Source: Oopsacas minuta (lineage: Eukaryota > Animalia > Porifera). Taken from it: 64,000 nt of DNA. Under the pieces are notes generated by a model. It did no database searches. It had not been told where the DNA came from and was given only the letters and a program-made list of their open reading frames with translations. The stretch lies in the NCBI GenBank assembly GCA_024704765.1, contig JAKMXF010000318.1:304159-368158 (forward strand), read 5' to 3'. This document shows, piece by piece, positions 3,863-44,200 of this stretch. Within the stretch, counting starts at the first letter, position 1. Each line of letters opens with the position of its first letter. A program made the translations under genes and the position numbers.

Positions 3863-6800
3863 ATGTCAGTTCCAGCTGATTCTGATCGTGTATGTACTAC
3901 CTTCCCGAAGGTTAAGGAGGTAAGGGCCTATATCAAGGACTCCGAGAAGGGAGGACAAGTTGGACAAGGAGGGGATTGTCATGATGTACCCACGGGACAC
4001 TGGATAGGCGGGAGTGCTCCCCACATGCCAATCGCTAACCCTATGTCTGGATACGAGATGTACGAGGACGACCGGAATTCTTGGGGTATCGGAGCTCTAG
4101 GCAGTCTGGTAGTTGAGGTAGAGACGACAGAGGGGGACAAGGGGGTGGGGGTGAGTCTAGGGGGAGAGGCAGGGTGCTATATCGTAGAGAAACACCTCTC
4201 AAGGTTCGTAGAAGGACAGAACCCAGCTGATATTGAGCTCATGTGGGATCAAATGTATAAATCTACTATCAATTATGGAAGAAAAGGATTACCATTACAA
4301 GCTATTAGTGCTGTGGATTTAGCTTTGTGGGATCTGTTAGGACATTTGAGGAGAGAGCCTGTCTATCAGATGCTGGGGGGCAGAACCAAGCCTTATCTAC
4401 CTGTATACTCTACTACATGTGATGCTCTACAGGCTAAGAAGTTTGGGTTCGTTGGTGCTAAGATAGGATGTCCTTACGGTCCTAGTGCAGGGGGGGAGGG
4501 GCTGAAGAAGAACGTAGAAATGTTCAAAAATACTAGGAAGCAGGTTAAGTAATAATATCTATTGGTTATATACTCCTGGATTGAATGCTGTAATACAGGT
4601 AGGAGATGAATTCCCTTTGATGCTTGACTGCTACATGGCTCTAACACTATCATACTCTATACAGCTAGCTAGAGAACTTAAGGATCTTAAGTTCAAGTGG
4701 ATAGAGGAAGCATTACCCCCTGATGATTATCAGGGATACAGAGAACTTACTAGTGTTTGCAGGTAAGATAAATACTTGTCATAAATTTGATTGTATATAT
4801 AAGTGTCAATCAATAACATACGATAGAGATAGCTCAGTGTTTGTGTTCTCTGGATAGGAGAGATACACCCTTGATTAGCGTGTGGTCTGCTACTTCATCT
4901 TGATAACTAGCTGTTGTTAGTACTGTAGCTGTTACAGGGAGAATCAATGTATTGATTTCTGAGATAATCTCTAAATTGTGTTCCACATGTCCTTGTCCTA
5001 TCTCTCCCATAACTCCCACAGGTACTGCATACACTTCTATCTGGAATGAAGAACTCATACCAGCAGCAATTGGATGTGGAGTGTATATGATCTTTATACC
5101 GGTAGAAGGAGGAGGTGGCTTAATCTTATATCTATAATAAATACTAAATAACTTAGCTATCAGATAGCTATATAGTCAATACCTTGTACTTCTTATTCCA
5201 GTATTCTTTATGATTACTGTGTAAGAATAATTGCATCCTTCCTCCAGCATTCCAAAGTCTACTTCTGTCTCTAGGAGACTGATCCCCTGCTTCAGATTCT
5301 TGGAGAGGGGCATAGATAGAGAGGCAGTGTTTAGTTGCCTCTTGGTCTCATCTATGCACTCTCTATCTCCAGGTCTCAATGTCTATAATAATAATAATAA
5401 GCAATAATGTTATAGCAGCTCACGATCTGGTTCGTGACTATTGTATCTATGGTTTTTTGTTTAAATTGCAATAGAGTCACGAGAAATTACATTATTCATT
5501 AAGTTCACAAGCCTGAGAGTCTTGTGATAGTATTTAAATGCTTCTAATTATGAATTACGTAATGGTAATATACAAGGAATGCTAAATTGACTAAAATAGT
5601 TATAGGGATTGGTAACCGAGTTCGTTAGGTATATATTCGAGAATTCAGTAATATGCACACCAAACTGATTCAATGGAAGTTATCTCTGTTCCTTTATCTA
5701 CCCCCTCAAACTCTGAGAAAGAGTTTAGGAAGATGGATGAAGATCCAGATTCTGCTCCCGAGCTAGTCAAAGAAACTTACAGAAAGATGCACACTTTCCA
5801 GACCGTTGAGTTTGGGAAGAAAATGCGAGAGAAGTGGGGCAAATACAATTACTGTGAAATGACAGTTATGGAAGCACTGGACACATTGAATGAGTTGGTG
5901 GATGAGAGTGACCCTGACTTTGTAGGACTGCCCAATAACTACCATGCATTCCAGACGGCAGAACTGTTGCGTAGATACAACCCAGATTTAGATTGGTTAC
6001 ATGTAGTAGGACTTATACATGACATGGGTAAGGTGATAGGACTAGTGGATCCTGATACAGAGCAGTGGGCACTTGTAGGGGACACATTTCCTGTAGGGTG
6101 TGAACCTCAGAAATCTGTGGTATTTCAGAATCTAGGATTTCCTGAAAATCCTGACACCAAAGATCCTCGTTACAACACTAAGCTAGGAATGTATCAAGAG
6201 AACTGCGGACTAGATAACGTAATGATGTCATGGGGACATGATGAATACTTGTACAGAGTACTCAAGAACCATGTTAATATGAAACTACCAGATGAAGCTC
6301 TGTTCATTATCAGGTACCATTCATTTTATCCGCTACACCATCGAGATGATTATCAGTATCTACTCAGTGATGCTGACAAAGATAAGATAAAGTTGGTTAA
6401 ATTATTCCAAAAATTTGATCTATACAGTAAGGAAAAAGATGCTATCCCAGAGGTAGATCAGCTGAAGGATTATTACCAGAAGCTCATAGACAAATATGTC
6501 CCTGGTAAGATAAAGTTCTGACTAGCTTATCTCTCTCTTACTAGCTTATATCCTCGCTAGCTAACTTATTTATTATTCACGAATATCATACGTAATGTTA
6601 GTTACTTTAGTATTTACCTTTAGAGAGTTGGGTAGTTTAACTGGTGCTGTTCTGGGAATTCCTGCTACGTTATAGAATAAATACTCAGGTATAGGGTTAG
6701 CCGTATCCTCAGCTCCTGCTGCTACTGGTGTAGCTTTATTAGGACGGTCTGTATCTGTATCTATTGGCGGTAGCTTAGAGGGAGAGAACACAGGACTCTC

Positions 6801-9800
6801 CTCTGTAGTGACTATACTAGGATCAGCTGATGTAGATATATGAGGTGATGGGTTATCAGGACGATCTCTAGCTAGAGATACAGTAGATGTAGAGTTATCT
6901 GGGAGTAGAATAGTAGTGCTAGCATAACCTGGGACTAACTGTCCAGCTTCTTGAGATAGCTCTGATAGACGTGGGTTAATCAATCTCTCAGATTTAAGGA
7001 CAGGTTCAGGAGGGGTATTACCACGACCTCTACGCATTGCTATAGGGAGTTCATCTGTTAGACGCTGTATATCAGGGGGATTGTTCTGTAGAAATTTGTT
7101 ACCATCTTCGCTATAGAAATAACCAGGTATATCTTTTGTACGTAATGCTTGCAGGTTAGCTTGAAACTCTTCCAGCTCTGCTCTATCAGCTTCTACTCTC
7201 TCAGGCCTTCTCTCAGAGGATGCGTGTATTGTCTCCTGAGTAGGAGGTGATAGCACTAGGTCCTTGAACTCTTGTATCAGTTTATCATCATTATCTTCTG
7301 TGTGTATATTATATCTATTGAATATGTCAGTAGCTTGTTCTTGTACTGAGTCAGTTTTTATCTCTACAGGAGAGAAGGAGTCTCTCTCCTTATTTATTTC
7401 ATCCCACCAGGAATTAACTGCATTCAAGCTAGCTACAAAAGCACTCATCATTTCCTGCCCAATTGGTTTATGTTCTAACAACTCTCTGCGTCTAAAACCG
7501 CGAGGAACCTTCTTATTCTCTGTACGTCTAACAACAGTTCCTATATCCAGGCCACGACCCACCCCGCTACCAAATACCATATCTTTATCTTTCTCACATT
7601 TGTTTAAGCCTAGAGGGAAATAATACTGAGTCCTCAGGTTTATAGGTATAATGTCATCCTCTGTATAAGGGAGGTGTGTCAACTTGTGAGAGGGAGTGTT
7701 AATAGGACTAATAACGGAGTGTACAATAACAGTAGAGTCTCCAGGGAGAGCATGTGATTGTAACAACATCCCATCTTTAGCACGCCATCTCTCCAATTCC
7801 TTTCCTGAGTATTCCTTGCTGAGCAGTTCTATGCCAGATCCGTCTCTTGATAGCACAAACATTCTAGGGATAGGCTTGTTTGGTAATGATTCTTCTTTCT
7901 TACCTTTCTGTTTACACAAATAACTTTTGAATTCTTTGTTTATTGCATGAGTTCTCTCATTCTTAACAGTTATCCAGTCATCTCCACCTATCAGTTTCAT
8001 GTCAACTTGACTGACATTTGACAGGCTGACTGATGAGTTTCCATCTTGTGTGAAGTTACATAATACCTCCTCACTTGTAACAGAATATGTTCCTCTCCTA
8101 TCAGCTACTATATCATTTCCATCAAACAGTGTTATCACTGCTTGTCCCTCAGAAGGTGTTGAAAAGCACACTTTAGCATACCCTGTACACTCAATTTGTA
8201 TTTGTGAGTGTGTGTTGCTAGAAGTGAGTCGGGTTCCATCAGCAAACTGAACTATCCTAGTACCATCCTTCCTCAACACCGTGATCAGCTGATCCTCTCT
8301 ACTCACCAGCTCCTCTTCACTCACTGGGTCTCTCTGCCAGGATTTAAGGAGAGGATCTTTGTAGATAAAAGAACTAAATTTGTCAATCTTTTCAGTAGAT
8401 AATTCAACCTCTTGTCCTTCTTTACCATCTCCCATATCCCTTGTATCTTCACCCACCTCCTCTTGTCGTACCCATTTATACAATACCCTCTGTCCTTGTG
8501 TATCAGTATACATCCATTGCTTATCAGCTAGTGAGTATTCCGTATGATTAATCATGTGTGTAAGAGCTTGGGGAGGAGATAGGTTTGTTAGAGTAGATAG
8601 ATCAGGAGTATTCCTGCTTAATAACTCTAGTTCTCCTTCACAGAGAGAGCGAGCACTGGATCCGTCCGGCCGTAACAACTACAATAAATAATCAATCTAG
8701 CACTTACGTGACGTCATTATACATCTTACCTGCACGCTAGAATTCCTCATAAACCTTATAACTGTACCGTCTTCATAATAAGATCTACTGGCCTCTAGAG
8801 AGGCTGGGTAGAGTCTGAGCTTGTCACAGGGCTGGGAGGGGCAAGGGGGGTTAGGGTAGCATTGTGTTACACACAGAAACCCGTCTGATCCATCTCTGAT
8901 AGTGACATCACTCGACAAGTCTACCTATATTAATATTAAGTCTAATTTTAACTAAATCAATCAATCTATTAATATTTGTAACTCAATATAGCCTGAACTA
9001 CCAGTACTTATAGAACAATATATCATAGTGTATTAGTTATATGGCTATATCAAGTGCAGACAGTATACCTACTCTGTGTAGAGTACAAATAGGAGAGAAG
9101 ATAGGGGGATACAGGAAGGATTTGTTGATAGAGAATCTATCTGAGAGGGATGAGCTGTTCTTAGTGTGTTCCCGGTGTAGTGGAATACTCAGGGACGCGT
9201 GTACTGTAAGCAGTGGAGAACAGGTATGTGAGGATTGTATCGATGAGGATGAACAGTCTCTACCTAACTTGCAAGTTCGGAATACCGTTATACAACTGAA
9301 ATGCAGATGTCCGTTAAGTCAGAGTGGATGTGAGTGGTCTAACGAGATAAAACATTGTGAGTCACATCTACAAACCTGTCAGTTTGTGTACGTCAATTGT
9401 CAGTTCGGTTGTGACATAGTTATGACGCGTGCAGAGGAGCAGTCTCATTTGAAAGAGACCTGTGTACTACGTACAGTTAAGTGCGAGCACTGCGGAGTTG
9501 TGTGTGTGGCTGGGGAAATCAATGAACACTCTGGCGTATGTGAAGAGCTAATGGTGGATTGTGATTTGGGTTGTGGGGTGCGTGTAAAGAGAGAGTTCCT
9601 AGGAAAGCATTTACGGACAGAATGTGAAGAGGGTGAGGTTACTTGTCCTTATGAGAAGTACGGGTGTGATATTGGGGAGGTTACTAGGAAGGAACTTCGA
9701 CCACACTTGGAGGAGAAGAGAAACACACACACAGAACTCAGACTTAACTCAATGGAAGAGCAAATAAAGAATCAGAACTCACTAATTGAATATCTATCCA

Positions 9801-12800
9801 CTAAAGTAGCAGCTCTGGAGAATCACAACCAAATACTAGCTATGAAAACACAGGACAGGACTAATGTGTTAGTATGGGAGATACAGAACATGCATGCTAA
9901 TCTCACTTTCCAAACTATAATAATGAAAGCCCCTAGTTCCCCCGTGTTGAAGATATCCCGGTATGAAATGAGGTTCGGTTGGTGGGTGGAGGGGGATATC
10001 TTAACTGTAGATATATTCTCTGTACTGGGTAGGGATGATGGAGAATTGGAATGGCCATTCATAGCTAACTGTTGTATTCGATTAATATGTGATAGCGATC
10101 CAGTAAACAGATCTCTGGAGATTAAGAAGATGATACAGGTCAAAAGGAAGTCCCCATCTATTCTGAACATGCCTGGTACTAGGATAGCCTCAGTGAATAA
10201 AGCAATTGTACTCGCTCCTGGATTCATGCGGGCAGGAGTATTAAAGATAGAGATAAGACTAGACGGCCTTAACACTATTTAGATACTGTATTCACTATAT
10301 TTACTTTACTCGTTTACATATAAATACTACTATTATAATACCTTACCTTAGAAGAACATGTAACCTGGAGACCATACTCAGTAGAAGCGAATAGAGTTTG
10401 GTATTTGTTCTCTCTCTTGAATTTAAGTAGTTTCTCTTCTTTCAATCTCTCTATCTCTCTTCTCCGTCTATCCCTCTCCTCTGTCAGCTGACGGTGTTGT
10501 TCCACAGCCATCTGATCATCTGTCTTCTTGCCACGACCTCCCTTACCTCCTAGTTTAGATTCTGACGTCATAGGGGGCATGCCAGGAGAAGGTGTGCGAA
10601 TATGTTCCTCCTCTAACAGTCTTATCTCTTCGTCTTCTAGCATTTGTTTGGGGGGAGGTAGTCCTCCTAATTTACCATACGGACTGAGACTAAGCTTAAC
10701 TCCTGTAGGCAGACTAACTCTATAACTAGCATAGAGGATAGGAAGGATTGGTTCTAATACAGTAACAGGACTAATGACATCATCTGTATTATCTCTTGTT
10801 ATATTAGAAGCTTTGTTATCTAGCAGCAAGCTGATACCAGCTAGTACTCCTGATTCATGTGAGTACTGCATGGTAATAGAGCTGTGAGGTGTAGAGTAGA
10901 AAGCTCGTTGTTCTGAACTTATGAATTCACTCTCATTTAACTCTATCTTGCTACTACTTCCTCTTCCAGCATACCATTCATATCCTAAGTCATACCCCGT
11001 TAGTAGCAATAGCTTCTGTTCTATCTCAGACTTCTGAGCACTGAGTAGATCCTCTCTACTACCAGCGGTTTCTCCATCTCGTACACGCTCCACAGAGGAA
11101 CTACTGACTCTAGAACTCTTCAGTCGAGATGATCGTGATGTTCTAATCGTGTTCTTGCTGTGAGAAGATCCTCTCCCATCCTTGGATTTATCCTTTTCCC
11201 CCGAGGGAGTAGAGATCTGTGTTAAAGATACCTGTGACTGGTTAGGTGTCAAATCCTGAGTCTCCAACAACTTATCTCTCTCAAAACTATTCAGCTGCCA
11301 TATCCTATCAACCAGAGGGCTGATATCGGAATGTAAGAACCGTTGATATAGATAGAACCCTGTAGGTGTCAATAACCGCGCGTTCCATTCATTTCTCAAT
11401 GACAATGGGTGGAATAGTATTAGCAACTTATCACTCTGTCTATGGTACTTAGTAACACATGTAGGATACCCTCTATCTGGTGACAGGGCTGTCTGTATTC
11501 TCTGATAGATGACGTCACGTGTTAACGGCTCTGACCACTGCATATTAGCTATGACAGGTGTCAAGCTGTCAACAGACTCTTGTCTATTTGTATCAGGGTA
11601 AGGATCATCAAATAGTTGTTGAGAAGGTGAGTGTACCATCTCTGCAAAGGATAGCATTATGAGTAGAGATTGTAACTGATTATGAGATAGAGGAGGAACA
11701 GACTTAGAGGATAATCTTAGTAGTTGTTGGTAACGAGCATCCACACGGGATCTATCGTCTTGTTGTAGTTGGGGGAATTTCTTTAAGAGTTGAGCTGCTT
11801 TATAATTATCTAACATCTGCCTCTCTACACCTCTCTTGTCTAGTGCATGAGCTGGAGCTTCTAAAATACTTTCTCTTTCACAGATATGATCTCCTTCGTA
11901 TATGACCGGATATCTTATCGTCTTTTCTGATACGTATTTGGAACCTATAATTCTATATAAATCCTACTCACTAGCTCCACTTACTACACCAATTTACCTA
12001 TATTAGGTTTCTGTTTGATTCTATTCAAACTCTCCTGCAATCCTGTACTCTTACTGTCTCCTATATCTGTACTGGGTACTTGTGTAACATCACTCACGCA
12101 CACCTGCTGTAACATAGCATCCATGAGTATATCCACAGAGGAGCACTGGTTAGGAACCCCGTGTAATTGCTCTCTGTACAACAATCCTGGTGTATCTATA
12201 AGATAATATTAATTCAATACTATCTACAGTAGTATAAATATTCTAATTACTTTTGCTAGTGACTCTATTGCTTGTGACGTCAGCTAGAGAGAGGGAGTCT
12301 AAATACTGTTTGTGTAGTCTCTTCTGTTCTATCAGCTGATAGATATGATTAGCTACTTGATCGTATAATGTTTGTACTCTGTCTTGTTCAGGATCTACTG
12401 TGTAATCTACTATAACTAATCCTGTATCTCTCACACCAGATTCTCTAGCTGTATCTAATACTCTATCTGTAGTATTCCAGAACTCTTTAATACTCTCATC
12501 TTTATATACAGATAGTATAAATATATGTCTATTGATACTATCGTATATTAATATACCTGATTTATTCCTCTTTTCTCTCTCTTCTTCTTCAAATTCTCCT
12601 TGCTCCACCCCTCTCTCTCCTCCACTCACCCTCATTAGACAACCGGGTGGTACACCTATTCGTCCCATCTCTGATATGACGTCAGCATTCTTCACTCCAC
12701 TCAGTAACAAATAAGCTTCAGGTCCTTGAGAAGGTTCATCTTCTATAAATACGATCTCTCCTACTTCCTCCCCTCTCTTCCTCAAGATACTCTCAGGCTT

Positions 12801-14944
12801 AGTAGGCATAGGTATCCCTTCCTCTACTCCCTTCCCTGTCTTACCCTGTTTTCCTTTAGAGGTAGGAGTTACCTTCCCTACTTTCTTCTTGCTAGGGCTA
12901 AGAGCCCCTGATCCAGGTCTACCCTCTCGTATAGCGTCCTGCTGTCTCCTAAGGACGTCATCCTGTCTCAGCATAAGTAAACTCATCTTTATAGCTCTTG
13001 CTACAGTATCAGCTGTAACTCCTTCCTCAGAATTAGTCTGTGATTTCACTAGATCTGCTAGTGCTTCAGATCCTGGGGGTCTACTACCAACTGGAGAGGC
13101 AGCTCCTTTACCCTTCCCCTTGCTAGCTTGACTCTTACTCAGAGCAGCTGTACTCCCTTCTAGAGCTTTTTTTATGACTTCTTGATAAGACAGGGAGTAG
13201 AACTTTCTTCTCTGTTTGAACTCTCGACTAAGAGAACTTATCTGTTTAGCTAGAGCTGTAACAAATTCCTCAGAACAAGTATCTACCCCTGCTATAACAC
13301 ATATGCATAATCTCCAGCTGTCTGTGTCTAGAGACTCCTGAATCAGCTGTTCATCCCATCTTGGTCCTCCAGTTCCAGACCCCTTCCCTACTTCCTTTCC
13401 TTTCTTAGCTTTAGACATCTAGCTACTAACACGATACAATATTAATAATCATACAATTACTACTACGGTATATTTAATTAGTTTATTATTCGAAACATAC
13501 TATTACAATACACACAGTATGGTTATATCATTCTCCTGAATATGGAGTTCATCTGGGAGGTACAGTTATAACCATAGAGATCTGTAAAGAATGTATCAAC
13601 TGCGTAAAAGTCCATGTGAGGTATGAAGAAATCTCTCATATATTCCATCTTCCATTTCCCCATCTCTGAGTATTTAGCTCCTACGACTGAGCTATCTCTG
13701 TATAGCCTCGGGTTATTCTCCCCGACATAGAAGTTCTCACTCAGCATAGGGTTAGTCTTCTCGAATATAAAGTAGTCTCCTTCCTTCAGGTACTCGTGGA
13801 AATGTTCTATGATAGCATTTAGATTAACGTGTACATCTTCTATCAACATTAGAGGACGTGGTAGAGCTAATAGGAAGGAGCGAGGGAAGAGCTTTTTCAC
13901 ATTTTTTGTATCTCCTTCTAAGAACTTGACTTGGTTAGACACCATTTCGTTAACCTTATCGTCCCTTAAACTGACGTCACAATCCAGTGAGTATATTCCA
14001 CACTCCACCCCAAAATTACGCATTGTATCATCCAGCCATAAAGCAGACCCCCCAGTGTATGTACCTAGCTCTATGATACTCTTAGGTTTAACTTCTTGCA
14101 ATAATTGTGAGTATACACTCAAATCTAGTCCAGTTTTCAACATGGATACTCCCTTGTAGTTAGTGAGACACACCCCTCTAGCCAGAGCCTTTAATTGAGT
14201 GAGTTGGTATTCTGAGATGTCTCTACGTGATCCTATTGGTTCAAATCTCTCTGGCATAGTTATCAGTCTGTTTCTATGCCAAGCCATCTCTTCTGCAGCT
14301 TTACCATAATTGAATACAGTATCGTTCTTATAGGAAGGAATAGTTATAGTCCTTATGTGTATAGAAGTAGCTGGTCTTAACTTTAGGAAGTTACGTAGCA
14401 TTCTGCTAATAAGTATAAACATTAATTCATTTTATTATTTAGACAGCTGGGAATACTGGTTACTACAGGAGAGCACGAGTACACGCGTTATGGGTATAAA
14501 CAGCTGTTAGAGAGTCCTTCAGCCTGTGACGTAATACAACCAGATATTACATGGATGGGTGGGATTACAGAAGCTAAGAGAGTAGTAGCACTAGCTTCTG
14601 CTTTCAACACACCAGTTATCCCTCATGGTAGTTCAGTATACTCCTATCATCTACAGATAGCTTTCCAGAACTGTCCAATGGCTGAGTATATCAATCTGAG
14701 TAAAGATGGGGATCAGATAGTACCCTATTTTGGGGGATTGTTCCTAGACGAGCCTCTCCCGAAGGGAGGACGTATCCTCCTGGATTCTGATAAGGCAGGG
14801 TTCGGAGTTACTCTAAGAAAGGACGGACTGATGAGACCCTTCGTTAGATCTCAGGAAGAAGTGGATTGTCAGTTCAAGAGGAATGCCGAATATTTGGATA
14901 GCTTCTCTTACGATAGAGAAGTTAAGCCTATCTATCCTTTCTAG
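3863..14944 (+). CDS. L-rhamnonate dehydratase-like enzyme (RhmD/LRA3 group, mandelate racemase/enolase superfamily), 3 exons, 448 aa
   Basis: Exons 3863-4543, 4599-4762 and 14443-14944. Intron 1 is 4544-4598 (55 nt, GT-AG, phase 0). Intron 2 is 4763-14442 (9,680 nt, AG|GTAAGA...TTTATTATTTAG|A, phase 2 at both ends). The junction reads ELTSVCR-QLGILVTTGEHEYTRYG. Motifs: YGRKGLP..AISAVDLALWDL, MLDCYM, WIEEALPPDD, TTGEHEY, QPDITWMGG, PHGSSVYSYH. Confidence 0.88.
4834..13418 (-). CDS. SPAG17: Sperm-associated antigen 17 (axonemal central-pair protein, PF6 orthologue), 8 exons, nested in intron 2 of the dehydratase gene
   Basis: Exons 13418-12557, 12499-12251, 12195-11998, 11944-10347, 8924-8730, 8678-6606, 5382-5183 and 5131-4834. 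All junctions are GT-AG and phase-consistent (introns 57, 55, 53, 1422, 51, 1223 and 51 nt). Recognised segments: LRKRGEE...FIEDEPSQGPEAYLLLSG, KEFW, LHKQYLDSL, and C-terminal RYKIKPPPSTGIKIIYTPHPIAAGM...LILPVTATVL. Confidence 0.88.
5673..6521 (+). CDS. MIOX: Myo-inositol oxygenase (nested in a SPAG17 intron and in the dehydratase intron)
   Basis: DESDPD, HAFQTAE, GLIHDMGK, QWALVGDTFPVGC, SWGHDEYLY, IRYHSFYP and DLYSK di-iron motifs; intronless. Confidence 0.95.
   Translation: MEVISVPLSTPSNSEKEFRKMDEDPDSAPELVKETYRKMHTFQTVEFGKKMREKWGKYNYCEMTVMEALDTLNELVDESDPDFVGLPNNYHAFQTAELLRRYNPDLDWLHVVGLIHDMGKVIGLVDPDTEQWALVGDTFPVGCEPQKSVVFQNLGFPENPDTKDPRYNTKLGMYQENCGLDNVMMSWGHDEYLYRVLKNHVNMKLPDEALFIIRYHSFYPLHHRDDYQYLLSDADKDKIKLVKLFQKFDLYSKEKDAIPEVDQLKDYYQKLIDKYVPGKIKF
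9041..10282 (+). CDS. TRAF-like protein (degenerate RING, TRAF-type zinc fingers, coiled coil, MATH-like C-terminus), nested
   Basis: CSRCSGILRDAC..EQVCEDC, repeated CxxxCx(11-12)HxxxxC TRAF fingers, heptad segment (LNSMEEQIKNQNSLIEYL), VLVWEI..WPF MATH-like region; intronless. Confidence 0.82.
   Translation: MAISSADSIPTLCRVQIGEKIGGYRKDLLIENLSERDELFLVCSRCSGILRDACTVSSGEQVCEDCIDEDEQSLPNLQVRNTVIQLKCRCPLSQSGCEWSNEIKHCESHLQTCQFVYVNCQFGCDIVMTRAEEQSHLKETCVLRTVKCEHCGVVCVAGEINEHSGVCEELMVDCDLGCGVRVKREFLGKHLRTECEEGEVTCPYEKYGCDIGEVTRKELRPHLEEKRNTHTELRLNSMEEQIKNQNSLIEYLSTKVAALENHNQILAMKTQDRTNVLVWEIQNMHANLTFQTIIMKAPSSPVLKISRYEMRFGWWVEGDILTVDIFSVLGRDDGELEWPFIANCCIRLICDSDPVNRSLEIKKMIQVKRKSPSILNMPGTRIASVNKAIVLAPGFMRAGVLKIEIRLDGLNTI
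13523..14401 (-). CDS. CmcI / cephalosporin hydroxylase family SAM-dependent methyltransferase (rhamnosyl O-methyltransferase-like), with a mitochondrial-presequence-like N-terminus
   Basis: YKGVSMLKTGLDLSVYSQLLQEVKPKSIIELGTYTGGSALW, VKFLEGD, LMLIEDVH, GDYFIFEKT. ATG 14401 (MLRNFLKLRPATS...) is preferred; the alternative ATG is 14422. Confidence 0.8.
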   Translation of the reverse strand: MLRNFLKLRPATSIHIRTITIPSYKNDTVFNYGKAAEEMAWHRNRLITMPERFEPIGSRRDISEYQLTQLKALARGVCLTNYKGVSMLKTGLDLSVYSQLLQEVKPKSIIELGTYTGGSALWLDDTMRNFGVECGIYSLDCDVSLRDDKVNEMVSNQVKFLEGDTKNVKKLFPRSFLLALPRPLMLIEDVHVNLNAIIEHFHEYLKEGDYFIFEKTNPMLSENFYVGENNPRLYRDSSVVGAKYSEMGKWKMEYMRDFFIPHMDFYAVDTFFTDLYGYNCTSQMNSIFRRMI

Positions 14945-20462: not shown

Positions 20463-21143
20463 AATAACTGAAGAATAGACTATTTGCTACGCTAAAGAAT
20501 CGAAATTGTTATTGATGTAACAATAAAAGTTACACACTTTTGTGGTTATTCCAGGATTTCCTGCAGATTAATGAAGAGTACCAAAAAGTATGTGTGTTCT
20601 AATTTTAAAGAAGTTAATTAGAATGTCTTAGAAATCACTGAAGGGAGAAGTATAAATATTGTGCCTTTATTGTATAATGTACTATCTGATGGAAATACTA
20701 CTAATTAGTTTACGTAGAACATTTTGAAGATAAAATAAGTATCAAACAGGAATAATTTATGGAAATTACAATGGGAAATAACCACTGTTTTGTTACTTTC
20801 AGTTCAATATAATACAATACTAGCGAGATAAGCTTGCTAGGTCACTGCGCGACAGGCGGAAGTATCCTTAAGCTTTGTCCCTTGTTTTAGCATAAGTATG
20901 AAACAGCTACATTTGTCAGTTCTTTTGGGAAAGATTGGCAGACAAATATTCAAGTACTTGCTATTACAGAACGATTTCCAAAGTCAAACACTTTTGGCTA
21001 AATTTCCAAATATACCTCAGGCTGATGCGTAATATAAATTGAAATTTAATATAATTAAGATTTATTAAACAAAGTGATAAGCAGTACAGAGCATAGCATA
21101 GGATAAACCAAAGGATAAACTAATATTGCAATTATTATTATTA

Positions 21144-21617
21144 TTAAAGCTTTGATTGATAAAATGCTATCTCTCTTTTAAGAGCCGCCTGCTCCTTAAT
21201 TAATCGCAGTTTTTCTTCCGTCATATCATCAATAATATAACTCATAGATTCATTTATATTAGTCTGTTTTCTTCTGAAGTTCTGTGTGTATAATCGTCTC
21301 CTCTCTCGAGTTTGTAACCTAATAAGTACGGCTAATTCCTCTTGGCGAAGACTCATGCAAATTGCAGCATTCTTGATAGAAGATTTCCTGAATTTGCATA
21401 ACAAACTTCTATCAATAGTATCATCTGTGAATTGTGTATTACTGGGTAGCCCAGGAAGTAAGAACGCACTTCTGCCTCTACAGATTAGATCAGTCTCTTC
21501 ACTGTAGTAGGAATGATCAGTAAGCAGGTCTAGCTGAGATATCGAACGAGTGTAGTTAGGGGAAAAACTATCATATTCACTAGAAGGAAAAGATGTATCG
21601 ACATTGTTGCAGGCCAT
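21144..21617 (-). CDS. Divergent Maf-like bZIP protein
   Basis: LRQEELAVLIRLQTRERRRLYTQNFRRK aligns without gaps to the Maf basic region (Tyr and invariant Arg kept), followed by a zipper ending LKREIAFYQSKL. Confidence 0.6.
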   Translation of the reverse strand: MACNNVDTSFPSSEYDSFSPNYTRSISQLDLLTDHSYYSEETDLICRGRSAFLLPGLPSNTQFTDDTIDRSLLCKFRKSSIKNAAICMSLRQEELAVLIRLQTRERRRLYTQNFRRKQTNINESMSYIIDDMTEEKLRLIKEQAALKREIAFYQSKL

Positions 21618-28087: not shown

Positions 28088-28726
28088 ATGCTACTAATCT
28101 CTATTGGTATTTTTATCCTTATAACAACTACTATAACAAATCAACTACGGTTAGAGATAGACCTTCCTGCTAGGCCAGATATCTCTGAAAATTTCTTTGC
28201 TAGAGTATTATCTAATCTCTCTACCAATAGTGTTAATGTACAGAATAATATTACACTAAACAGGATGTATTCTGAAGGGAAACAGTGCTCTAGAGGGTGT
28301 CAAGTATGGAAGGGACGGCCTGGTAAGGAGTGTAGCTATACACTAGTGAGAGAGGACCTGAAGCTAGAGTATGCTGCTGATATAAAGAATAATACTCTAC
28401 AGAATTGTTACAAGACTGTACTGAATGGAGACGAAATTATCAAGTTATGGAAATGGATATTAAACGCTACTTATCTTGGCAGAGAAAAGGACAATAACGG
28501 AGACATGGTAGATATATGGCATCAGCTAGAAGCAGACGGAGATACATCAGAATACCTGGAGAATAAGATAGCTGTGAGTACAATAGATCCTAATATACCT
28601 GTGTATGTCAAACAGACATACAGATCTTCTGAAAACTCTGATAACTATGTTTTTCGGTATTACAACTTTACAACTAAAGTCAGTGAGGATGAATTTAAAA
28701 TACCTACAAAATGTAACGGTGTGTAA
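28088..28726 (+). CDS. Secreted ependymin-related (EPDR)-like protein
   Basis: Signal peptide, 212 aa, few Cys, ends YYNFTTKVSEDEFKIPTKC, resembling the EPDR C-terminal F-x-x-P-x-x-C motif. Confidence 0.5.
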   Translation: MLLISIGIFILITTTITNQLRLEIDLPARPDISENFFARVLSNLSTNSVNVQNNITLNRMYSEGKQCSRGCQVWKGRPGKECSYTLVREDLKLEYAADIKNNTLQNCYKTVLNGDEIIKLWKWILNATYLGREKDNNGDMVDIWHQLEADGDTSEYLENKIAVSTIDPNIPVYVKQTYRSSENSDNYVFRYYNFTTKVSEDEFKIPTKCNGV

Positions 28727-35227: not shown

Positions 35228-38200
35228 CTAATTCTCATCCCAGAGAGGATCTCTTCTTGCATTGATGGTGTATAGCAAATGATCCCGCATAACTTCTAGG
35301 GAAGAGTATTGAGGGAGTTTGATTTGGAATATGCAGGTTTCTGCACGAATAAATCGTTCATCCAGGTTACTAGCACCCTTGGAGTCTGGGGCAGCTATTA
35401 TCATAGGAAAGGGGGGAGTGTGTCGTATTTCTTCACCTCCTTGACTACAAGGACACTCTGATGGAATTCGTTCCAAATTGCAGGCAAATTTGATAAACCT
35501 GCGTAATTCTTCTTGAGAGAAGCTCTTTAGAACTTGCCAGAAGAATTGTATGTGTTTGTCTGCTTCAAGGAGACCCACAGAATATTTGGTATGTCGCATG
35601 AGGAATCCAATCTCTATTTGAGGAGTACCACATATCTTAAACTCTAATCCTTCAGGAGAGAAGAGTTTTAGAATGTGGATTGGTAGGGTAGCTGCTATCC
35701 CACACTTGATGGCATCAACTTTCTTCTCACAGCTGTACTCTTTCAATTTAGCTTTTCTCATAAGTGATACATAAAATTCTCTTTGGGAGAATATTGGAGA
35801 GTTTGGGAGAGATTGTCCACAATGTTTTCTCATAAGTTTAAGAAATTCAGAAGGTTTCTTCTCCTTTTCTTTGAGTTCAGAGGACTCTTGGAATGAAGGC
35901 AGTACCTCTTCTTCTTCTATAGCTTCGTATAGCAGAGAATCAAAATCCTCCATCTCTATGTCTAGCAGTTGCTGAGTCAGGTTATAAGTAACTCTGTCAA
36001 TCTCACAGAGATCTGTATTGTCAGGAGCTAGAGATAACAGCTGTTTCCAGAAGATGGGCATTAAATCTAGTGGAAGAGGTATGTTAGCACGTAGAGATAC
36101 ACCAATAAACATTCCTAGATACATTAGCAGTCTCTCCTCTAAGTATGTCATAGGGGTAGGATTTAAAATGTATCTGTCTTTATGAAAGCCAGCTCCTGCA
36201 CTGGGACAAGAGACGAATAAGGGTAGAGAGGAGGATTTGATTTCTACTACAATTCTCCAAATAAAGTGTCTGAATGAACCAGCATTTCCATGAACTCCAG
36301 GCATCCTAACGTCGAAAGCATAGGTCGGTTCTCCGCCTATTTGTCGCAGGTCTACACAAAGCTGGGGTGAAGGAGTTCTGGTGAGTTGCTGAACTCCCTG
36401 ATAGAATTCTGACCCCCATGGAGAGGTCTGGGTTCCTTCCACACTGTGTAATGCATCAATCTCTATAACAGGGGGATCCTTGCCTGCTCTCCTAGCAGTG
36501 CTTTTAATAAGAAATTCCAATATCTTGGTTTGGTTGTCATAGAATAACAAGTGTCGTTTGGAGAGGAGAGCGTTGCCCAGGCTCTCAGTGTTGGTAGCAG
36601 CACTCCTGAAATCTGTGAAAGGAATAAGATCCTCGAATAAAGCATTCAGTTTTGTTAGAATAACATATCTAACTCGTACCACAGAAATAGGAATATTCTG
36701 CAAGATTTGAGTACAAGGATGTGATAAGAGAGCTTCAGAAGGCCAGATTTCATTAGCTTTTAATACTGATGGAGTAAGAGATAGATTTCTACAGATTAAG
36801 TTTACAAAGTAAACCAGAGCTTGATCCATCTCAAAGCTCCAATCGATATACGCCTCCTCTGTCATTATATCACCTAACAATTCTCCAGTCAAACCATAAC
36901 CACAGCAAGCTAGGCCGCGAGATAGAGAACGAATATCTTTCTTAGTAGCTTCTAAACAAATGTTCTTGAAGGCTACAAGATTAATTGTACCCTCTTTTGT
37001 AAGATCCCATCTCCTGAATATCCTATTCAGATACTCTGCCATGGTTGGTTTGCCTCGAATAGCGTCAAAGAATCGATACAACAAGTTGTCTGGCCTTTCG
37101 CTGTTGAGGATATTTTGCTTGCTAACCTTCTCTTTGGTTCCTCTCTCACTGAGAGTAGTAGGTCTAGATTCTGGGGGAATACAAGACATGAATATTTTGG
37201 TAACAGCTTGTCTAATCTGAGGTTTTATCTCTTTCTTGTCTTCTGTGAATATTCTTGATTTGCAGTATTTGTCAAGAGCTTCGTTCAGTTTCTGGTCCTC
37301 TCCCATAAAGAAGGAGGAGGAGGCCAGAGATACGGATAGGTTAGACGGGACCTTTTCATCCAGAGAAGAAACGTACTTTGGAATTTCTCTGAGTATCTCT
37401 TCTCTAACTTGCGTAGCTTTTGAGGAGTGTTTCAACTCTATAACTGCTATACCTAATAACTCTAATACTTCTTTCTTAGGACTATTGCTCAAAGAAGGAG
37501 AAGATGAGGGAGTAGATTGTGGAGTAGAAGTAGGAATACTGATAGGTGTAGCTTGTATCTTTTCTTCCTCAGTCAATGTCACTGGAGGTGATTGAGAATC
37601 TGTTTGAGCTGATTCTTTAGGAATATCTTCAACGGTAGGTGTGGCTGTTGTAGTTGTTACGTCAGCATTACTCTCAGGCTTGTCAGTTGGAGGAGGAATC
37701 TCTTCAGTCTTCTTCAGAGCACTGGTCTCTACTTTATATATTTTCCTATGTGGTAGATACAGTTCATCATTTACAAGTCCTCCATGCATAACGGTTATAG
37801 ATTTAATAGCATCGATTACGTCATCAGGTTTCAACTGAGAATTCAAGCCGGTAATCACTAATAATCTCCTGCTGGTGTTCAGGTTGAGAATTTCGCGAGA
37901 AGCTTCAAAGGCTAACTTATTCATTGATTCTGTTTCTCGTTGTGTGTACAGATCGTCTAAGAGTGAGAAATTGTAGTAGAGAGATGTCAGCCAAGTATCA
38001 GATATTTTCTCTTTCGGCTTCTCTATCGGTTTCTTTTCTGTAACAGCTGGTCTCCTTGGTCGTTTGTCCTTCTTTCTGCCAGAAGGCAGTCCTCTATCGA
38101 CAGGATCTTTTACACTTATTTCAGCTTTGTGAATGGAAATTGAAGTTTGGTGTTCTGAGTAAGGCGTGGTACGCTGCACCTCTTCGTGAGCAACGATGAG

Positions 38201-41200
38201 ATTTAATAGAGTTTGGAAGTAGGTTGAGAACTTACCGCTACCCCCTTTAGTTACAGAAGTTGGTAAATGTAAACTCTTACTCTCTTCGATAATATTTGTA
38301 GAATCATTACCGGGAAATGAGTTTAATTCTTTCCCAAACAATTCAATTAGTTCTTCCTGTAAATAATGAATCTTCCTGAAAGAATCAATCAGAGAATTAG
38401 CAGAAGCAGGGTCTATACTCATAGCAGTACGAATGAGGTCTGCTAAGAGAGAGAACACTATTTCCCTTAAATAGGGAGGGGAATTGGTAGAATGAATGAA
38501 TTCGGTAATCCACTCAATACACTGCTTCAATAGAGGCATATAATCAGATATCACGAACAGAGCAGGTTTTTCTAGACACTCTTCAACTTCTAAAGAAGTA
38601 TCTTTAGGATCAGAGAGTTCTTCATCAATTAGAAAGCTTGGAACCTCACCAAAGGTTAGAGCGTCCAAAAGATCTTGTTGCTCATCCTTAGTTAAATGTT
38701 CGCTTATCTCGGAAGAGGGGATAGCTTTGCTCTTAGGCTTTGAAGGTTTTGTATCTTCATCGAATAAACTATCTTTTGTGTCTTTGGGAGTGATAGAAGG
38801 TATTTGAATACGTTTGTCTTTGAGGAAGTTAGAAAATTCCTGCAGGAAAGCTAGCCCGAGTGGGAGATCAGGATGTATACCAAATACTTCTACATTTGCT
38901 CCAGGATCACGCATGGTAGTCATCTGCAAGTGTATTCGGTTATCTGGTACAAGGAGAACTGGGAATTTGGCTCCACAATACGGCTGGATAGCAATATCTT
39001 TTGAGAGGACATTAGGGTATCTAACTATCTCGAAAAAGTTAACAGAATTCTTAGGTGGTTTATGAGAAGAAGGATGACCTTTGTACACGAACACTCTCAC
39101 CCATGGTCCTTCCGTTTTAGAAATAACTACGCTAGAAGCCTCGACACGACAAGCTGTGGCTGTAGACGGCTTGGGAGGAGGTTTAGCACCTGTACACATC
39201 TGACAAGAAGTATCAGCTCCAGGATTGCTAAAGGTACAGGTGGGACAAAGCCATTCTTTAGGAGCTTCTTCCTTTTTCGTCATTTCTCCGTCTGATACGT
39301 GTTTACATGCGACTAGCACACACGCAGCTGTAGGAATCTCTATGTCCATACTCTCTCTAGAGGCTGTAATAGGAACACTTACATTGGATATTGCATTGCT
39401 GCTCTGTTGGAAGATAGAACAAATCTCTGCTGAGATACTTTCTAGACTGTGTGCGTCATGACACTCAGAAATGAGTGCATAGAGTGTGCTACTGATGACC
39501 TGGGAATTCTTGTAGAAAAGAGATGCTATCTTGTTATCCAGAGCACTTATACAGTCAGAAGGCTGTAGGGATGATAGTCCTGACCAGGGTATTTGTGTAG
39601 AGTCTGGGAGAGCTGTAGCTAGACTCAAATAGGAAAACTGTTTGAGATAAGATATGCGAGTGATCAGGAGTTCAGGAGGTGAGCAGATAGGAGTCTGTAG
39701 AGGTGAATACTCTGATACAGGGAGTCTAAAATCTGTATGTGCTAGTAAGCTGACCAGGGCAGATTGACAATACTTCATTGTTAGAGCATTTTCATATTTT
39801 ATCAGTGCTCTATGCATATACACGTTGATGGACTGAGATCTAAGGATAGGAATGTTGCTCTTCCTCGCGCCTTTTGGAGGTTTCTCGAGTAAGTCTAGAG
39901 GGTACCAGTAACGTACCAACACGCCTTCATTCTCGAGATAGGTTTCAACTTGCACCAGGTTTGTGGTCTCTTCTTTAGCTAGAACTATTCCGGTCAGACC
40001 AAATGTTTTAGTCATTTCTTTAGTGTTAAACTTAGAACTGCCTCCAGTCTCAGGAGGAGATTTCTTAATTACTAGAATAATATTCTTTCTGACACTCTTA
40101 ATGTTTAGCTTTTCAGCTTCTACTTTCATATCCTCTAGCGTAGGATACTTCAAATTCTGAGGTCGTGTATGTGGCTCGTGTTCGTAAAGACTTTCTGCAA
40201 TCATAACGGCAAAATCACAAAGTCCTTGCTGCAGAGCTCCGACAATATTCTCTCTGCCTAATCTCCTCTCGTTATCGTTTCTGAATCTACGGTCTAGAGC
40301 TGGGAATACTCTCTCTTCCCAGGTTTTGATCAGCAGTTTTATAAGTTTATCTCTTTCAGCCTCTGTCTGGACATCATCTGTAGCTTCCTTATCAATATCT
40401 TCCCCTAATCCGACCCTTCCTCCAGGTCCTATCCACACCATATCATTGAGAGAATCGATCAGTTCGTATTGGTAGAATAGCTTAGCGTTATAGCCAGTGC
40501 TGTCACTTGTCTCTGGATAGAAAACTTTAACTCCTTCTGGCTCTTTCTCAATCTCTTTCTTAGCCTCTTTGTTCTCTGAGTTTTGAACAACTAACGGGTT
40601 TTTTTCCTCTGAATCTGACTCGCTGTCACTAGTGGGAGGGAAGGGCAGAGCCGCGAAGAGACGAACTATTTCCTCAGCAGACTCAGCAGAGGGAAGATTG
40701 AGAGCAGCGTCTCTGTGGTGATGTCCAAGATTGTAGGAGAAGTTTCTAGTACCAAAGTTAGCCCATACTTTTGTTCTCTTGAGGAAGCAGAGACAAGGAA
40801 AGAGAGCTTCTGCAACTCCGTTAACTTCTTGAGGTATCTTTTCTCCATTCACGGTTATATATACTCTGCCTAGAGGAGATTTATTCTTCTCTCGAATCCA
40901 ACCCATACCGACTATATCACGTCCTGTTAGTGGCTTAGGAAGACTGAATACGACATTATTCATTGCATCATCTCCTACACAATGCAACACGTTTCCATTG
41001 GATGCAAGCAGACAGGCACCTTGTGGTACTTTCCAAGCATCATCTTCATCTGCTTTAGGCAATTCCTGAGGTGCATACCCCATATAGAAAATGGGATCTT
41101 GTCCTAAATCCTGTACTGGGTTGAAGAGCTCTAGTTCCCAGTAGAAGGACGGAGTGAGAGGAGGTAAGGGCTCTGTAGAGTAGAGACGAATTCCGAATTC

Positions 41201-44200
41201 TTTCAAATCACAAATTGGATCAATAACAACATCCACACGCGTCATTCCATTAGTCATTATAACACCATACACGCGAGGATATGGCCGCTCTATGTCCCAG
41301 ACCAAATTCTTCCTCTCTATAGTCTTCTTGATGGTTATTGGTGGAGCAGGAGGACGAGCACAGTCCCTGTACATCATTCGCAAACTGATCACTTGTTTCT
41401 CTAATACATTGTCTCTGTCTGCTGGATTGCATTGCTTCGCAACTTCAAGGAACTGGTCGAGACAGGTAGGATGTTGTTTCAATATTATCTTTGCCATTTC
41501 ATAGTTTTGAGACAGACGACATAACAACAGGGCAGCTCTCGTTCGTATTTCATTGTACAGTCTACAGAGAGCATACTCAGGTCCACTAGCATCAACAGTT
41601 GGTGATACGTCTCCTAGATCCAGGCTAGGCTGTGAGAGGATAAACAAGAGAGAATTAATCATATCTTCTGATACATTAAGTTTATCTAGTGCTATCATTG
41701 GCAACGAATCTGCTACCAATCTTGCTTGTGGGATCTCAAATGCTTCTTTAGGCACACGGTGTTTGTTGACATCTACTCCGTTCTGTAAGTTTACAAGAGC
41801 TAAAGATTGTTGATCCAAAACTTCCTTCACAACTCCAATGTCTTTGATACAGTCAGTATTCAGGACTCTGACCTGTGCTCCCTTATGGATAGTTTCCTTG
41901 AACCCTCCTAGTATTGCGAGGACAGCTACAAGTGGTTTACCCTCTGCAAAGTACTTGAGAGGTGCCTGAGGAGGAGTTTGATGCAATTCAGTAGCTTTAT
42001 GAATGTTCTTACAAAGCGTATAGATAGAAGTGATAATACTACTGACTAAACCGAGCGTATCAGATATAACCTCCCTTATAGCAGACACCCAAGCATCAGC
42101 TCCACTAGTGCTTAGACTATGGAGCATGTTTATAATCTCAAATGCCATGGACACTGCTACTTGACCACTAATGAAGGGACGGAGAGGATCATTTCTAAGC
42201 ATTTCGTTCTTCTGTTTGCATTCTTCATAAGACTGTTGTCTCTTCAAATCGAATCCTCCTAGGGAAGAAGCTTTTCCAGAAGTTGGTTTTCCTACACTCA
42301 CCAAGAACTGCTTTCCAGCCAATCTCTGAGCAGTCCTCAGTGCCTGTGATCTAGAGGTGGAGCAGTACTCAGCTTTGGTACTGTCTTTCAAGGCAGTCAC
42401 GAGATTGAGGAGTCTAGCTGGATTGAATGGTAGTCCTGATATGTGACATTCGAAGTTTTCCGGTTGGAATATTGGCAAAGGGAGGGCGTGCTTCGGTTCC
42501 TCACCTCTTCTCCTGTGAACATAGACCGTTAATCTACTGTCGTCTTCAGAAGACTCTTCAGGATTCGTAATAACAATTTCCTCTGAGATATTGTCCTCCT
42601 GTTCTTCTCCTGCATAGCTAGTCGTGTCTGGTACCAAGAAATCTCCGAGTTTGAGTAGAAATAATTTTATAATGTTAGAAGCATTTGATTCTGCAGTTTT
42701 CCTAACCATACTGGCATCAAGGCTCTCTAGATCAGATGAACTGTCGTCTAGCATCGTGAAAGAAGAAGCTTGGAAATTTATGGAAAGCGAGTAATCAGGT
42801 AGTAAGATATCTGCACAATCTCTTTCTGTTAGGAGAGGTAGTACCACTCTACACAGCTGGAGAGTCAGATAGACGAGACTAGGAGAAGGTCTGTGGTCAA
42901 GCAACAGGCGAAGAAGTTTACTTACGAAAGAGGATTGACTGATCAACTCTTTGCCTAGTTTGCTCTTAGAGAGTTTGAGTAGAAGAGAGAGAAGGGAATG
43001 GAGCATGCTCGTGGCTAGAATTTCACAAGTGGCAATCAGATTCATTGTTCTGTCTAGATGCTTCTCGAGAAGGAAAGAGATCTGTTTGGACAATGTAAGG
43101 AGAGTGTCAGATATTTCTGAGGGTTTCTTCTTATCTTGCTTATAAATATACTGTAAAGCTAAGTACTGCAATGAACCCCAGGCTAAGTTTATAGTCTTTG
43201 TTATGTTCTTTTCTGAGATCTCCTCTGTACCAATTTGGTAATGCTCCTCACTGAATCCAGGCCCTGAAAAGTTCTGAGTGGACTGACAAGAGAGCAGAGA
43301 GTCTATTACCTTGATTAACTTACTCTGAATCATGACATCATCATCAAACACATAAAGGTCATTAGGAGAAGTTATGCATAAGTAAATAGAGTTCTTAGAA
43401 TATGCGAAAGGTTTAGAAACACAGAGATTAACTGCATTGAAGAAGGTTTTCTTGAAACTGTTTTTCACTTGTGCTACGCAGCCTGATCCGTATAACTCAT
43501 CAATCATAGCTCCCTCTCCGAGCCACCTAATGATGAAAGATAGAGACAGAGGTCCCCAACGCAATACCTTAGACAGGTCTAACAGCTGTTGGATGTATTC
43601 GATTGCTTTCAATCTAGATTTCGCTCGTTTCTTGCAATGTTTACTAGCATTGATAACATTCGCAGCAGTTATGTTCTTAGTCAGACTGATAGCTATATAG
43701 GAGAAGAGCTGGTCTATGTCAGATTTTGTACAAGCAGGTTTCTGAGTTTCTGCTTCTTTCTCACGATATGCTTCTCCTGTGATTTGGGGCACTGATATGG
43801 TACGGGAATAACTGGGTGGTTCAAGTGATAGGCCTATCATGTCTTTAGAATGGGTACGATAGTATTTAGAGCCGAAACAATCAGCTGATTCAATTTGAAA
43901 CAACAAGTGCAATTTCTCAGATATTGTTTCCAGCAGTAACTTCAGTTTAGAGAAAGGCTGAGATGGTTCAGGAATAGGCCGGGGCTCTGCCTTATGCTCG
44001 GGTTTTGTATGTGAATCTTCTGAAGGTTTAGCTTGTGAATCTTCTGAAGGTTTAGCTTGTGAATCCTCTGGAGTTTTAAATTGTGAATCCACTGGAAGTT
44101 TAACCTGTGAATCCTCAGTAGGTTTAGCTTGTGAATCCTCTGGAGGTTTAGATTGTGTATCTTCTGGAGGTTTAGCTTGTGAATCCTCTGTAGGTTTAGA

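Follow-up and report, generated by a model that had tools for sequence, protein, structure and literature searches.

Evidence for a three-level gene nest within one intron of a dehydratase gene in the glass sponge Oopsacas minuta

Can a gene be spliced across an intron that is almost entirely taken up by other genes? The question is raised by a locus in a 64,000-nucleotide stretch of the Oopsacas minuta genome (assembly GCA_024704765.1, contig JAKMXF010000318.1, positions 304,159 to 368,158 of the forward strand), which is referred to here as the window and whose own coordinates are used throughout. Two halves of a dehydratase gene (the host) lie on either side of an interval that contains a SPAG17 orthologue, a CmcI-like gene, a gene for myo-inositol oxygenase (MIOX), and a TRAF-like gene. 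We conclude that the arrangement very probably has three levels: the dehydratase is spliced across a 9,680-nt intron with four genes in it, and two of these four are themselves inside introns of SPAG17.

The host gene has three predicted exons on the plus strand. Exon 1 (3863-4543, 681 nt) begins with the ATG at 3863 and encodes residues 1-227, and exon 2 (4599-4762, 164 nt) encodes residues 228-281 and contributes two bases of codon 282. Between them is a 55-nt intron with GT..AG ends (4544-4598). Intron 2 (4763-14442, 9,680 nt, phase 2) also has GT..AG ends, and exon 3 (14443-14944, 502 nt) supplies the final base of codon 282 and all that follows, including the stop codon. As read from the DNA, intron 1 has the donor GCAG/GTTAAG after 4543 and the acceptor ATACAG/G before 4599; for intron 2 these are TTTGCAG/GTAAGA after 4762 and TTTATTATTTAG/A before 14443. 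An initial annotation had proposed that the codon split at 4762/14443 is restored by splicing, and this is borne out by the splice sites and by the three joined exons, which form an intact open frame of 1,347 nt encoding 448 amino acids. Without splicing, the frame beyond 4762 reads ...SVCR and stops after one extra codon.

The public records hold the gene in two pieces. Exon 1 is 100% identical to P0001, a 282-amino acid L-galactonate dehydratase-like protein of O. minuta at NCBI. This length is accounted for by exons 1 and 2 plus the read-through codon (3863-4766), which means that the public model breaks off at the donor. Exon 3 is recorded on the same 368-kb contig (P0123, 14555-14944) just as an anonymous open reading frame (ORF) of 129 amino acids. 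Both records are what would be expected if the split were an artefact or the gene dead, through a misassembly or a rearrangement into two non-functional fragments. The protein itself is the first thing to speak against this, as all of its catalytic motifs are kept.

In an exon-by-exon structure search, the best PDB matches of all three host exons were L-rhamnonate dehydratase (RhmD) entries. Exon 1 matches 2oz3 with an E value of 1.2e-59, exon 2 matches 2oz3 at 2.5e-14, and exon 3 matches 3fxg at 5.9e-39. Against the 2oz3 chain, residues 13-225 of exon 1 align to positions 4-204, residues 1-50 of exon 2 to 207-256, and residues 3-134 of exon 3 to 263-395. Extrapolation across the linkers between these matches leaves an offset of one residue, and therefore no segment of the protein is missing at the join. 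This agrees with the initial annotation, in which the DCYM and WIEE motifs were joined to the TGE motif with no gap. Both Pfam families expected of such a protein were detected, PF02746 (MR_MLE_N) in exon 1 and PF13378 (MR_MLE_C) in exon 3.

The motifs LDCYM and WIEE of exon 2 and TGEHE and IPHGS of exon 3 align with the corresponding motifs in 2i5q, 2oz3, and 3fxg. We take the Asp of LDCYM and the Glu of WIEE and of TGEHE to be the three metal ligands, and the His of IPHGS to be the catalytic base. In the Escherichia coli RhmD the ligands are reportedly Asp226, Glu252, and Glu280, and the catalytic histidine His329 (Rakus et al. 2008). The first two ligands are in exon 2 and the third ligand and the histidine in exon 3, so removal of the large intron would be required for an active enzyme, and a product that ends at 4762 would be inactive. 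The gene model needs to be corrected from 282 to 448 amino acids, since the annotated fragment is without the third metal ligand and the catalytic histidine.

Four sequencing runs of one O. minuta sample (X1-X4) contain host exons 1 and 2, and their assembler contigs were mapped over 4450-10449. In this region, X1-X3 resemble genomic DNA, with even depth and zero joints. X4 resembles complementary DNA (cDNA), with a depth that ranges from 53 to 28,000 and with GT..AG or CT..AC joints at predicted introns, host intron 1 among them. Two X4 contigs have a loose end at 4762 and continue there as ACAGCTGGGAATACTGGTTACTACA; these 25 letters occur once in the window, at 14443-14467. X4 also contains 76% of the words sampled from host exon 3. 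The 4762/14443 junction exists in RNA. Mapping of RNA across this junction had been named in the initial annotation as a way to check it, and the join is present in X4 and absent from X1-X3. Neither it nor the intron 1 joint was found in these three DNA-like runs, and therefore the joined form is not a retrocopy.

A genomic contig bears on the assembly of the region. Record 14 of X3 is 10,679 nt long and, from its position 408, covers all of 4450-10449, which argues against a misassembly in the mapped part. If it is colinear throughout, it would extend from about 4043 to 14721 and include both sides of the junction, the part beyond 10449 being an extrapolation. The contigs also record sequence variation. 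There are 12 single-base differences (about 2 per kb) between the window and the X1 and X2 contigs over 6394-9776, and several of these variants are also in X4 RNA contigs, some of them alongside the letter of the reference, a picture that two haplotypes in one sample would give.

Some features of these data weigh against a host gene spliced in one piece. The RNA support comes from the assembler contigs of a single run, and it is from its behaviour that we take X4 to be cDNA. The contigs are unstranded, two of them carry the 4762/14443 junction, and no single molecule among them spans exon 1 to exon 3. Splicing in cis of a single 11-kb precursor is likewise inferred, and the contigs cannot tell cis from trans.

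The SPAG17 orthologue, a counterpart of the PF6 central-pair protein, occupies 4834-13418 on the minus strand, where seven coding exons give an uninterrupted frame of 1,905 amino acids: exon 1 (13418-12251), exon 2 (12195-11998), exon 3 (11944-10347), exon 4 (8924-8730), exon 5 (8678-6618), exon 6 (5382-5183), and exon 7 (5131-4834). In this model the six introns are 55, 53, 1,422, 51, 1,235, and 51 nt long. Residues 17-381 of exon 1 match positions 13-373 of the PDB chain 9ijj_x, sperm-associated antigen 17 (E 2.5e-13), and residues 109-153 of exon 5 match positions 1434-1478 of the same chain (E 1.2e-10). As both exons match one SPAG17 chain, the pieces that flank the inner genes belong to one SPAG17 orthologue. 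Exon 3 searched alone had no PDB match, and no Pfam family was found in the large pieces. A protein atlas search gave a weak SPAG17 lead for the pieces. A 51-nt intron divides the C-terminal region in which a PapD-like or HYDIN-type immunoglobulin domain would be expected, and its two parts, searched one by one, no more than hint at such a domain (E 0.062 for PF22544, E 0.15 for PF14874).

Within the mapped region, X4 has joints at the SPAG17 introns 8679-8729 (51 nt) and 8925-10346 (1,422 nt, with CT..AC ends), and loose ends support the introns 5383-6617 (1,235 nt, with 6618 joined to 5383) and 5132-5182 (51 nt). Four of the six SPAG17 introns are thus seen in RNA, and X4 contigs cover exons 4-7. 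The gene had been described as lying whole inside the host intron on the minus strand with eight exons. Its location and strand stand, and the exon count does not, as seven coding exons suffice for the 1,905-amino acid frame.

The coding sequences of SPAG17 and of the CmcI-like gene are both within 4763-14442, and those of MIOX and of the TRAF-like gene are each within an intron of SPAG17. The double nesting of the latter two plus-strand genes, as initially annotated, is confirmed by X4 RNA at both enclosing introns, so that junctions are present across 4763-14442, 8925-10346, and 5383-6617. All nested ORFs are intact and are conserved in relatives, and X4 contigs cover MIOX and the TRAF-like gene.

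MIOX (5673-6521, plus strand) is a single exon of 282 amino acids in the SPAG17 intron 5383-6617, and it matches nearly the whole of its Pfam profile (PF05153, E 1.4e-101, positions 3-249 of 249). It has the highest RNA contig depth at the locus in X4, roughly 10-40 times that of the host, although contig depth reflects expression poorly. Just upstream of MIOX, X4 is nearly silent over 5450-5649. For these two reasons the nested genes would use very short promoters of their own.

The TRAF-like gene (9041-10282, plus strand) is a single exon of 413 amino acids in the SPAG17 intron 8925-10346. The protein contains PF02176 (zf-TRAF, E 2e-13) in two stretches, and no MATH family was found in Pfam at E <= 0.01. 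On this domain content it should be called a TRAF-zinc-finger protein rather than a TRAF. Unspliced X4 contigs span 9027-10324. At the 5′ end of the gene, an X4 contig carries 10 letters ahead of 9002, AAAAAACTTA, that are unmatched. A spliced leader was considered as their source and rejected, because the genome offers no AG acceptor at this site.

These two genes could also be seen as parts of an operon-like unit, in which each would be cut out of the host precursor by 3′-end cleavage and given a spliced leader, and the nest would be a device for co-transcription. Both are intronless and on the host strand, and their upstream spacers are tiny (289 nt for MIOX and 116 nt for the TRAF-like gene). 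The loose end at 9002 is unexplained, and a spliced leader of about 37 bp is reported from the glass sponge Aphrocallistes vastus by Francis et al. 2023 (PMC10282587). The same source finds that leader on just 4% of A. vastus long reads, and the missing acceptor at 9002, the silent stretch before MIOX, and a MIOX depth far above that of the host (with the same caution about depth) do not fit processing from a shared precursor. The RhmD-like loci obtained from other eukaryotes have no MIOX nearby. We therefore consider co-transcription of this kind very unlikely, and favour independently transcribed genes within the host intron.

MIOX makes glucuronate, and its place within a gene for a sugar-acid dehydratase points to a possible common pathway. 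A metabolic gene cluster of the two was rejected as an explanation, since no MIOX is near the host orthologue in three eukaryotic loci beyond the glass-sponge set (L010, L011, and L012), and these loci give no support to a linkage of the two genes in other groups.

The ends of the two same-strand genes bear on how the host could be transcribed. The stop codons of MIOX and of the TRAF-like gene are 96 and 64 nt away from the SPAG17 exon that follows, and neither interval contains an AATAAA or ATTAAA. The nearest plus-strand AATAAA past MIOX is at 6676, within SPAG17 exon 5. The initial annotation held that splicing must skip two same-strand genes together with their poly(A) signals. The skipping follows from the RNA junction; as for the signals, neither stop is followed by a canonical hexamer before the next SPAG17 exon. 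In the mechanism we propose, the host would be transcribed as one precursor of about 11 kb and spliced in cis, with the polymerase reading through the 3′-end sites of MIOX and of the TRAF-like gene. These sites look weak, displaced, or non-canonical, and we conjecture that this would ease the read-through.

The CmcI-like gene (13523-14422, minus strand) is a single ORF of 299 amino acids annotated by Pfam as RMNT_CmcI, a family of rhamnosyl-O-methyltransferase and CmcI proteins (PF04989, E 3e-9, 37.3 bits against a curated cut-off of 23.2). The match is partial, to positions 7-147 of 206 of the profile. An AATAAA is 36 nt past the stop codon. Its ATG (14422) is 20 nt from the host acceptor (14442), and therefore its 5′ untranslated region (UTR) and promoter must overlap the host polypyrimidine tract or exon 3; in relatives, the ATG is about 60-150 nt from the acceptor. 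The gene had been placed complete in the host intron, which is right for the coding sequence, but its 5′ UTR and promoter cannot be wholly inside.

Is the nest old? Proteins 73-85% identical to the host led to contigs of other assemblies, which are presumably from other glass sponges. The same gene order was found in the assemblies ERZ25072730, ERZ25766962, and ERZ20067936 and in ERZ2349/ERZ2687 scaffolds. Three of the loci (L001-L003) have the order SFXN, the N-terminal part of the dehydratase, the 3′ end of SPAG17 (minus), MIOX (plus), SPAG17 (minus), the TRAF-like gene (plus), SPAG17 (minus), and the CmcI-like gene (minus). Four others (L006-L009) run from MIOX through the CmcI-like gene and on into host exon 3. 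SPAG17 is colinear in four relatives, and the TRAF-like gene and MIOX interrupt it there at the same two residues (989 and 1740, respectively). The contig of L008 (1-9700) is a near-palindrome in which SPAG17 5′ ORFs are mirrored on both strands, probably an artefact of a metagenome-type assembly.

Two further loci (L005 and L004) overlap on one contig and were merged into a complete orthologous locus. Its host exons are at 10001-10684, 10756-10919, and 20805-21303, with a large intron of 9,885 nt. The same Arg codon is split after its second base, the frame of 448 amino acids is intact, and the protein is 76% identical to that of the window. The split codon is conserved wherever that site was readable in relatives. 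Between the merged locus and the window, the proportion of synonymous differences (pS) is 0.75, which is saturated, and that of nonsynonymous differences (pN) is 0.14; for exon 3, dN/dS is 0.12. Purifying selection acts on both halves of the host. The arrangement is old, with the nest in place before a deep split. Synteny in related species had been proposed as a further check, and the layout recurs in other sponge assemblies, complete in the merged locus.

With these results, the artefact or dead gene set out above can be judged. The junction in RNA, the genomic contig, the layout shared by several independent assemblies of other species, and the purifying selection on both halves, with the frame intact in the window and in the merged locus, together reject misassembly and pseudogene, to which we assign next to no probability.

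The same results bear on whether the two host halves are joined in trans. In that case one transcript of exons 1 and 2 and another starting near exon 3 would be made separately. A trans-spliced leader, and with it the machinery, is reported from the glass sponge A. vastus (PMC10282587), and a 9.7-kb intron is far outside the local norm of about 50 nt. Yet the halves share a strand and are in the correct order. The donor is strong (CAG/GTAAGA); the acceptor includes a polypyrimidine run, and a branch-like CTAAT motif precedes it by about 33 nt. SPAG17 at the same locus splices gene-bearing introns of 1.2 and 1.4 kb. Low-level RNA is present over the inter-gene stretch 5355-5703, as nascent transcripts would give, and relatives have the split at the same position and in the same phase. 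Trans-splicing appears to us highly improbable, and cis-splicing across the large intron is the reading we keep.

More distant genes were used to ask how the intron arose. The host protein is 50-65% identical to bacterial, fungal, and other eukaryotic members. In the orthologue of the mollusc Elysia chlorotica, intron 1 is at the identical position and phase, and the intron nearest to the large one is 17 nt upstream of it and in phase 0. Two other eukaryotic orthologues (L011 and L012) have no intron at the site of the large one; their two halves adjoin each other or are separated by 170 nt. The idea that the nest grew from an ancient shared intron is thus only partly borne out: intron 1 is common to Elysia, and the site of the large intron is empty in L011 and L012. 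So far, its exact position is specific to the glass-sponge set. Two of these loci have features of their own. The Elysia orthologue (L010:2857-8475), a 6.1-kb gene, overlaps an annotated opposite-strand gene of 349 amino acids. In L012 (10046-12379), an RhmD-like gene (about 65% identical) has the exon for residues 115-172 in four tandem copies, which may be duplicated or mutually exclusive exons.

How full is the large intron? The SPAG17 and CmcI-like genes occupy 9,485 of its 9,680 nt (98%). The remaining 195 nt form three spacers: 71 nt from the donor to the SPAG17 stop codon, 104 nt from SPAG17 to the CmcI-like gene, and 20 nt from the CmcI-like ATG to the acceptor. The small introns at the locus, measured or modelled, are 51-55 nt long, which fits the earlier remark that nearly all other introns here are small. 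Counting open frames of 100 codons or more, 88% of the window is covered and the longest stretch left over is 875 nt, which leaves no space in the window for an empty kilobase intron. It was also claimed that the only three kilobase-scale introns are those that contain genes, and this holds for the window.

A stronger interpretation would make the nest more than a by-product of compaction. Long introns would survive only with genes in them, and the nest would be locked in place past synonymous saturation because any deletion or rearrangement destroys several genes. Deliberately weak poly(A) sites would then allow a regulated trade-off between the host and MIOX, enzymes that possibly belong to one route from inositol to sugar acid. 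We think this unlikely as a whole. The rule of the initial annotation, by which large introns of this genome are kept only where they contain genes, exceeds the evidence of a single window. It also adds little, because compact, nest-rich glass-sponge genomes are already published (PMC10282587).

Beyond the locus, Pfam annotation of the window gives a tight row of unrelated genes. A plus-strand ORF at 28088-28726 was considered as a further nested gene and rejected, as it is between two separate minus-strand genes (SANBR-like and RPB2) and not in an intron. At 35228-48846 on the minus strand, an open frame of 4,112 amino acids is followed only 14 nt on by one of 421 amino acids; the two probably belong to a single very large gene that contains a tiny intron.

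The host resembles the RhmD family (2oz3, 2i5q, and 3fxg) in its N-terminal capping domain and C-terminal barrel domain, and its D/E/E ligands and catalytic His align with theirs. Unlike those entries, it is an animal gene with introns, and its truncated model is named L-galactonate dehydratase-like at NCBI. By sequence it belongs with the RhmD family, whose members dehydrate L-rhamnonate or a related 6-deoxy or hexonic acid; that it does the same would be a prediction.

Nested genes have been studied in Drosophila (Lee and Chang 2013, PMC3814207). The introns that hold them there are far longer than others, and the nested genes tend to lack introns when on the host strand and to have them when on the opposite one, a pattern explained by the authors through selection against mis-splicing. 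The locus follows this pattern: the same-strand MIOX and TRAF-like genes are intronless, and the opposite-strand SPAG17 has six introns. It differs in that the host introns of Drosophila remain long when their nested genes are discounted, whereas here just 195 of 9,680 nt are left besides them and other introns are about 50 nt. A spliceosome used to introns of about 50 nt also removes a gene-packed one of 9.7 kb, and the locus is a convenient test case for read-through and interference between a host and same-strand nested genes.

Nested genes are also known from other glass sponges. Francis et al. 2023 (PMC10282587) describes glass-sponge genomes as compact and rich in conserved nested genes, with 2,432 nested genes in A. 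vastus and many nests conserved between glass sponges. The O. minuta annotation has only 83, for which annotation methods are blamed, and nesting goes unmentioned in the O. minuta genome paper (PMC10280926). No description of the present locus was found in the part of the main text of PMC10282587 that was read. Like the A. vastus nests described there, it has whole genes in host introns in a compact hexactinellid genome, and, as also described, automatic annotation breaks the hosts, here cut to 282 amino acids. It differs in that it has three levels, and in that four genes fill 98% of one intron. It adds an RNA-supported, evolutionarily old, multi-level nest from a genome where the annotation of nested genes falls badly short. 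The locus is well supported and nested to an unusual depth, but it exemplifies an architecture that is already known and reveals no new kind of genome organisation.

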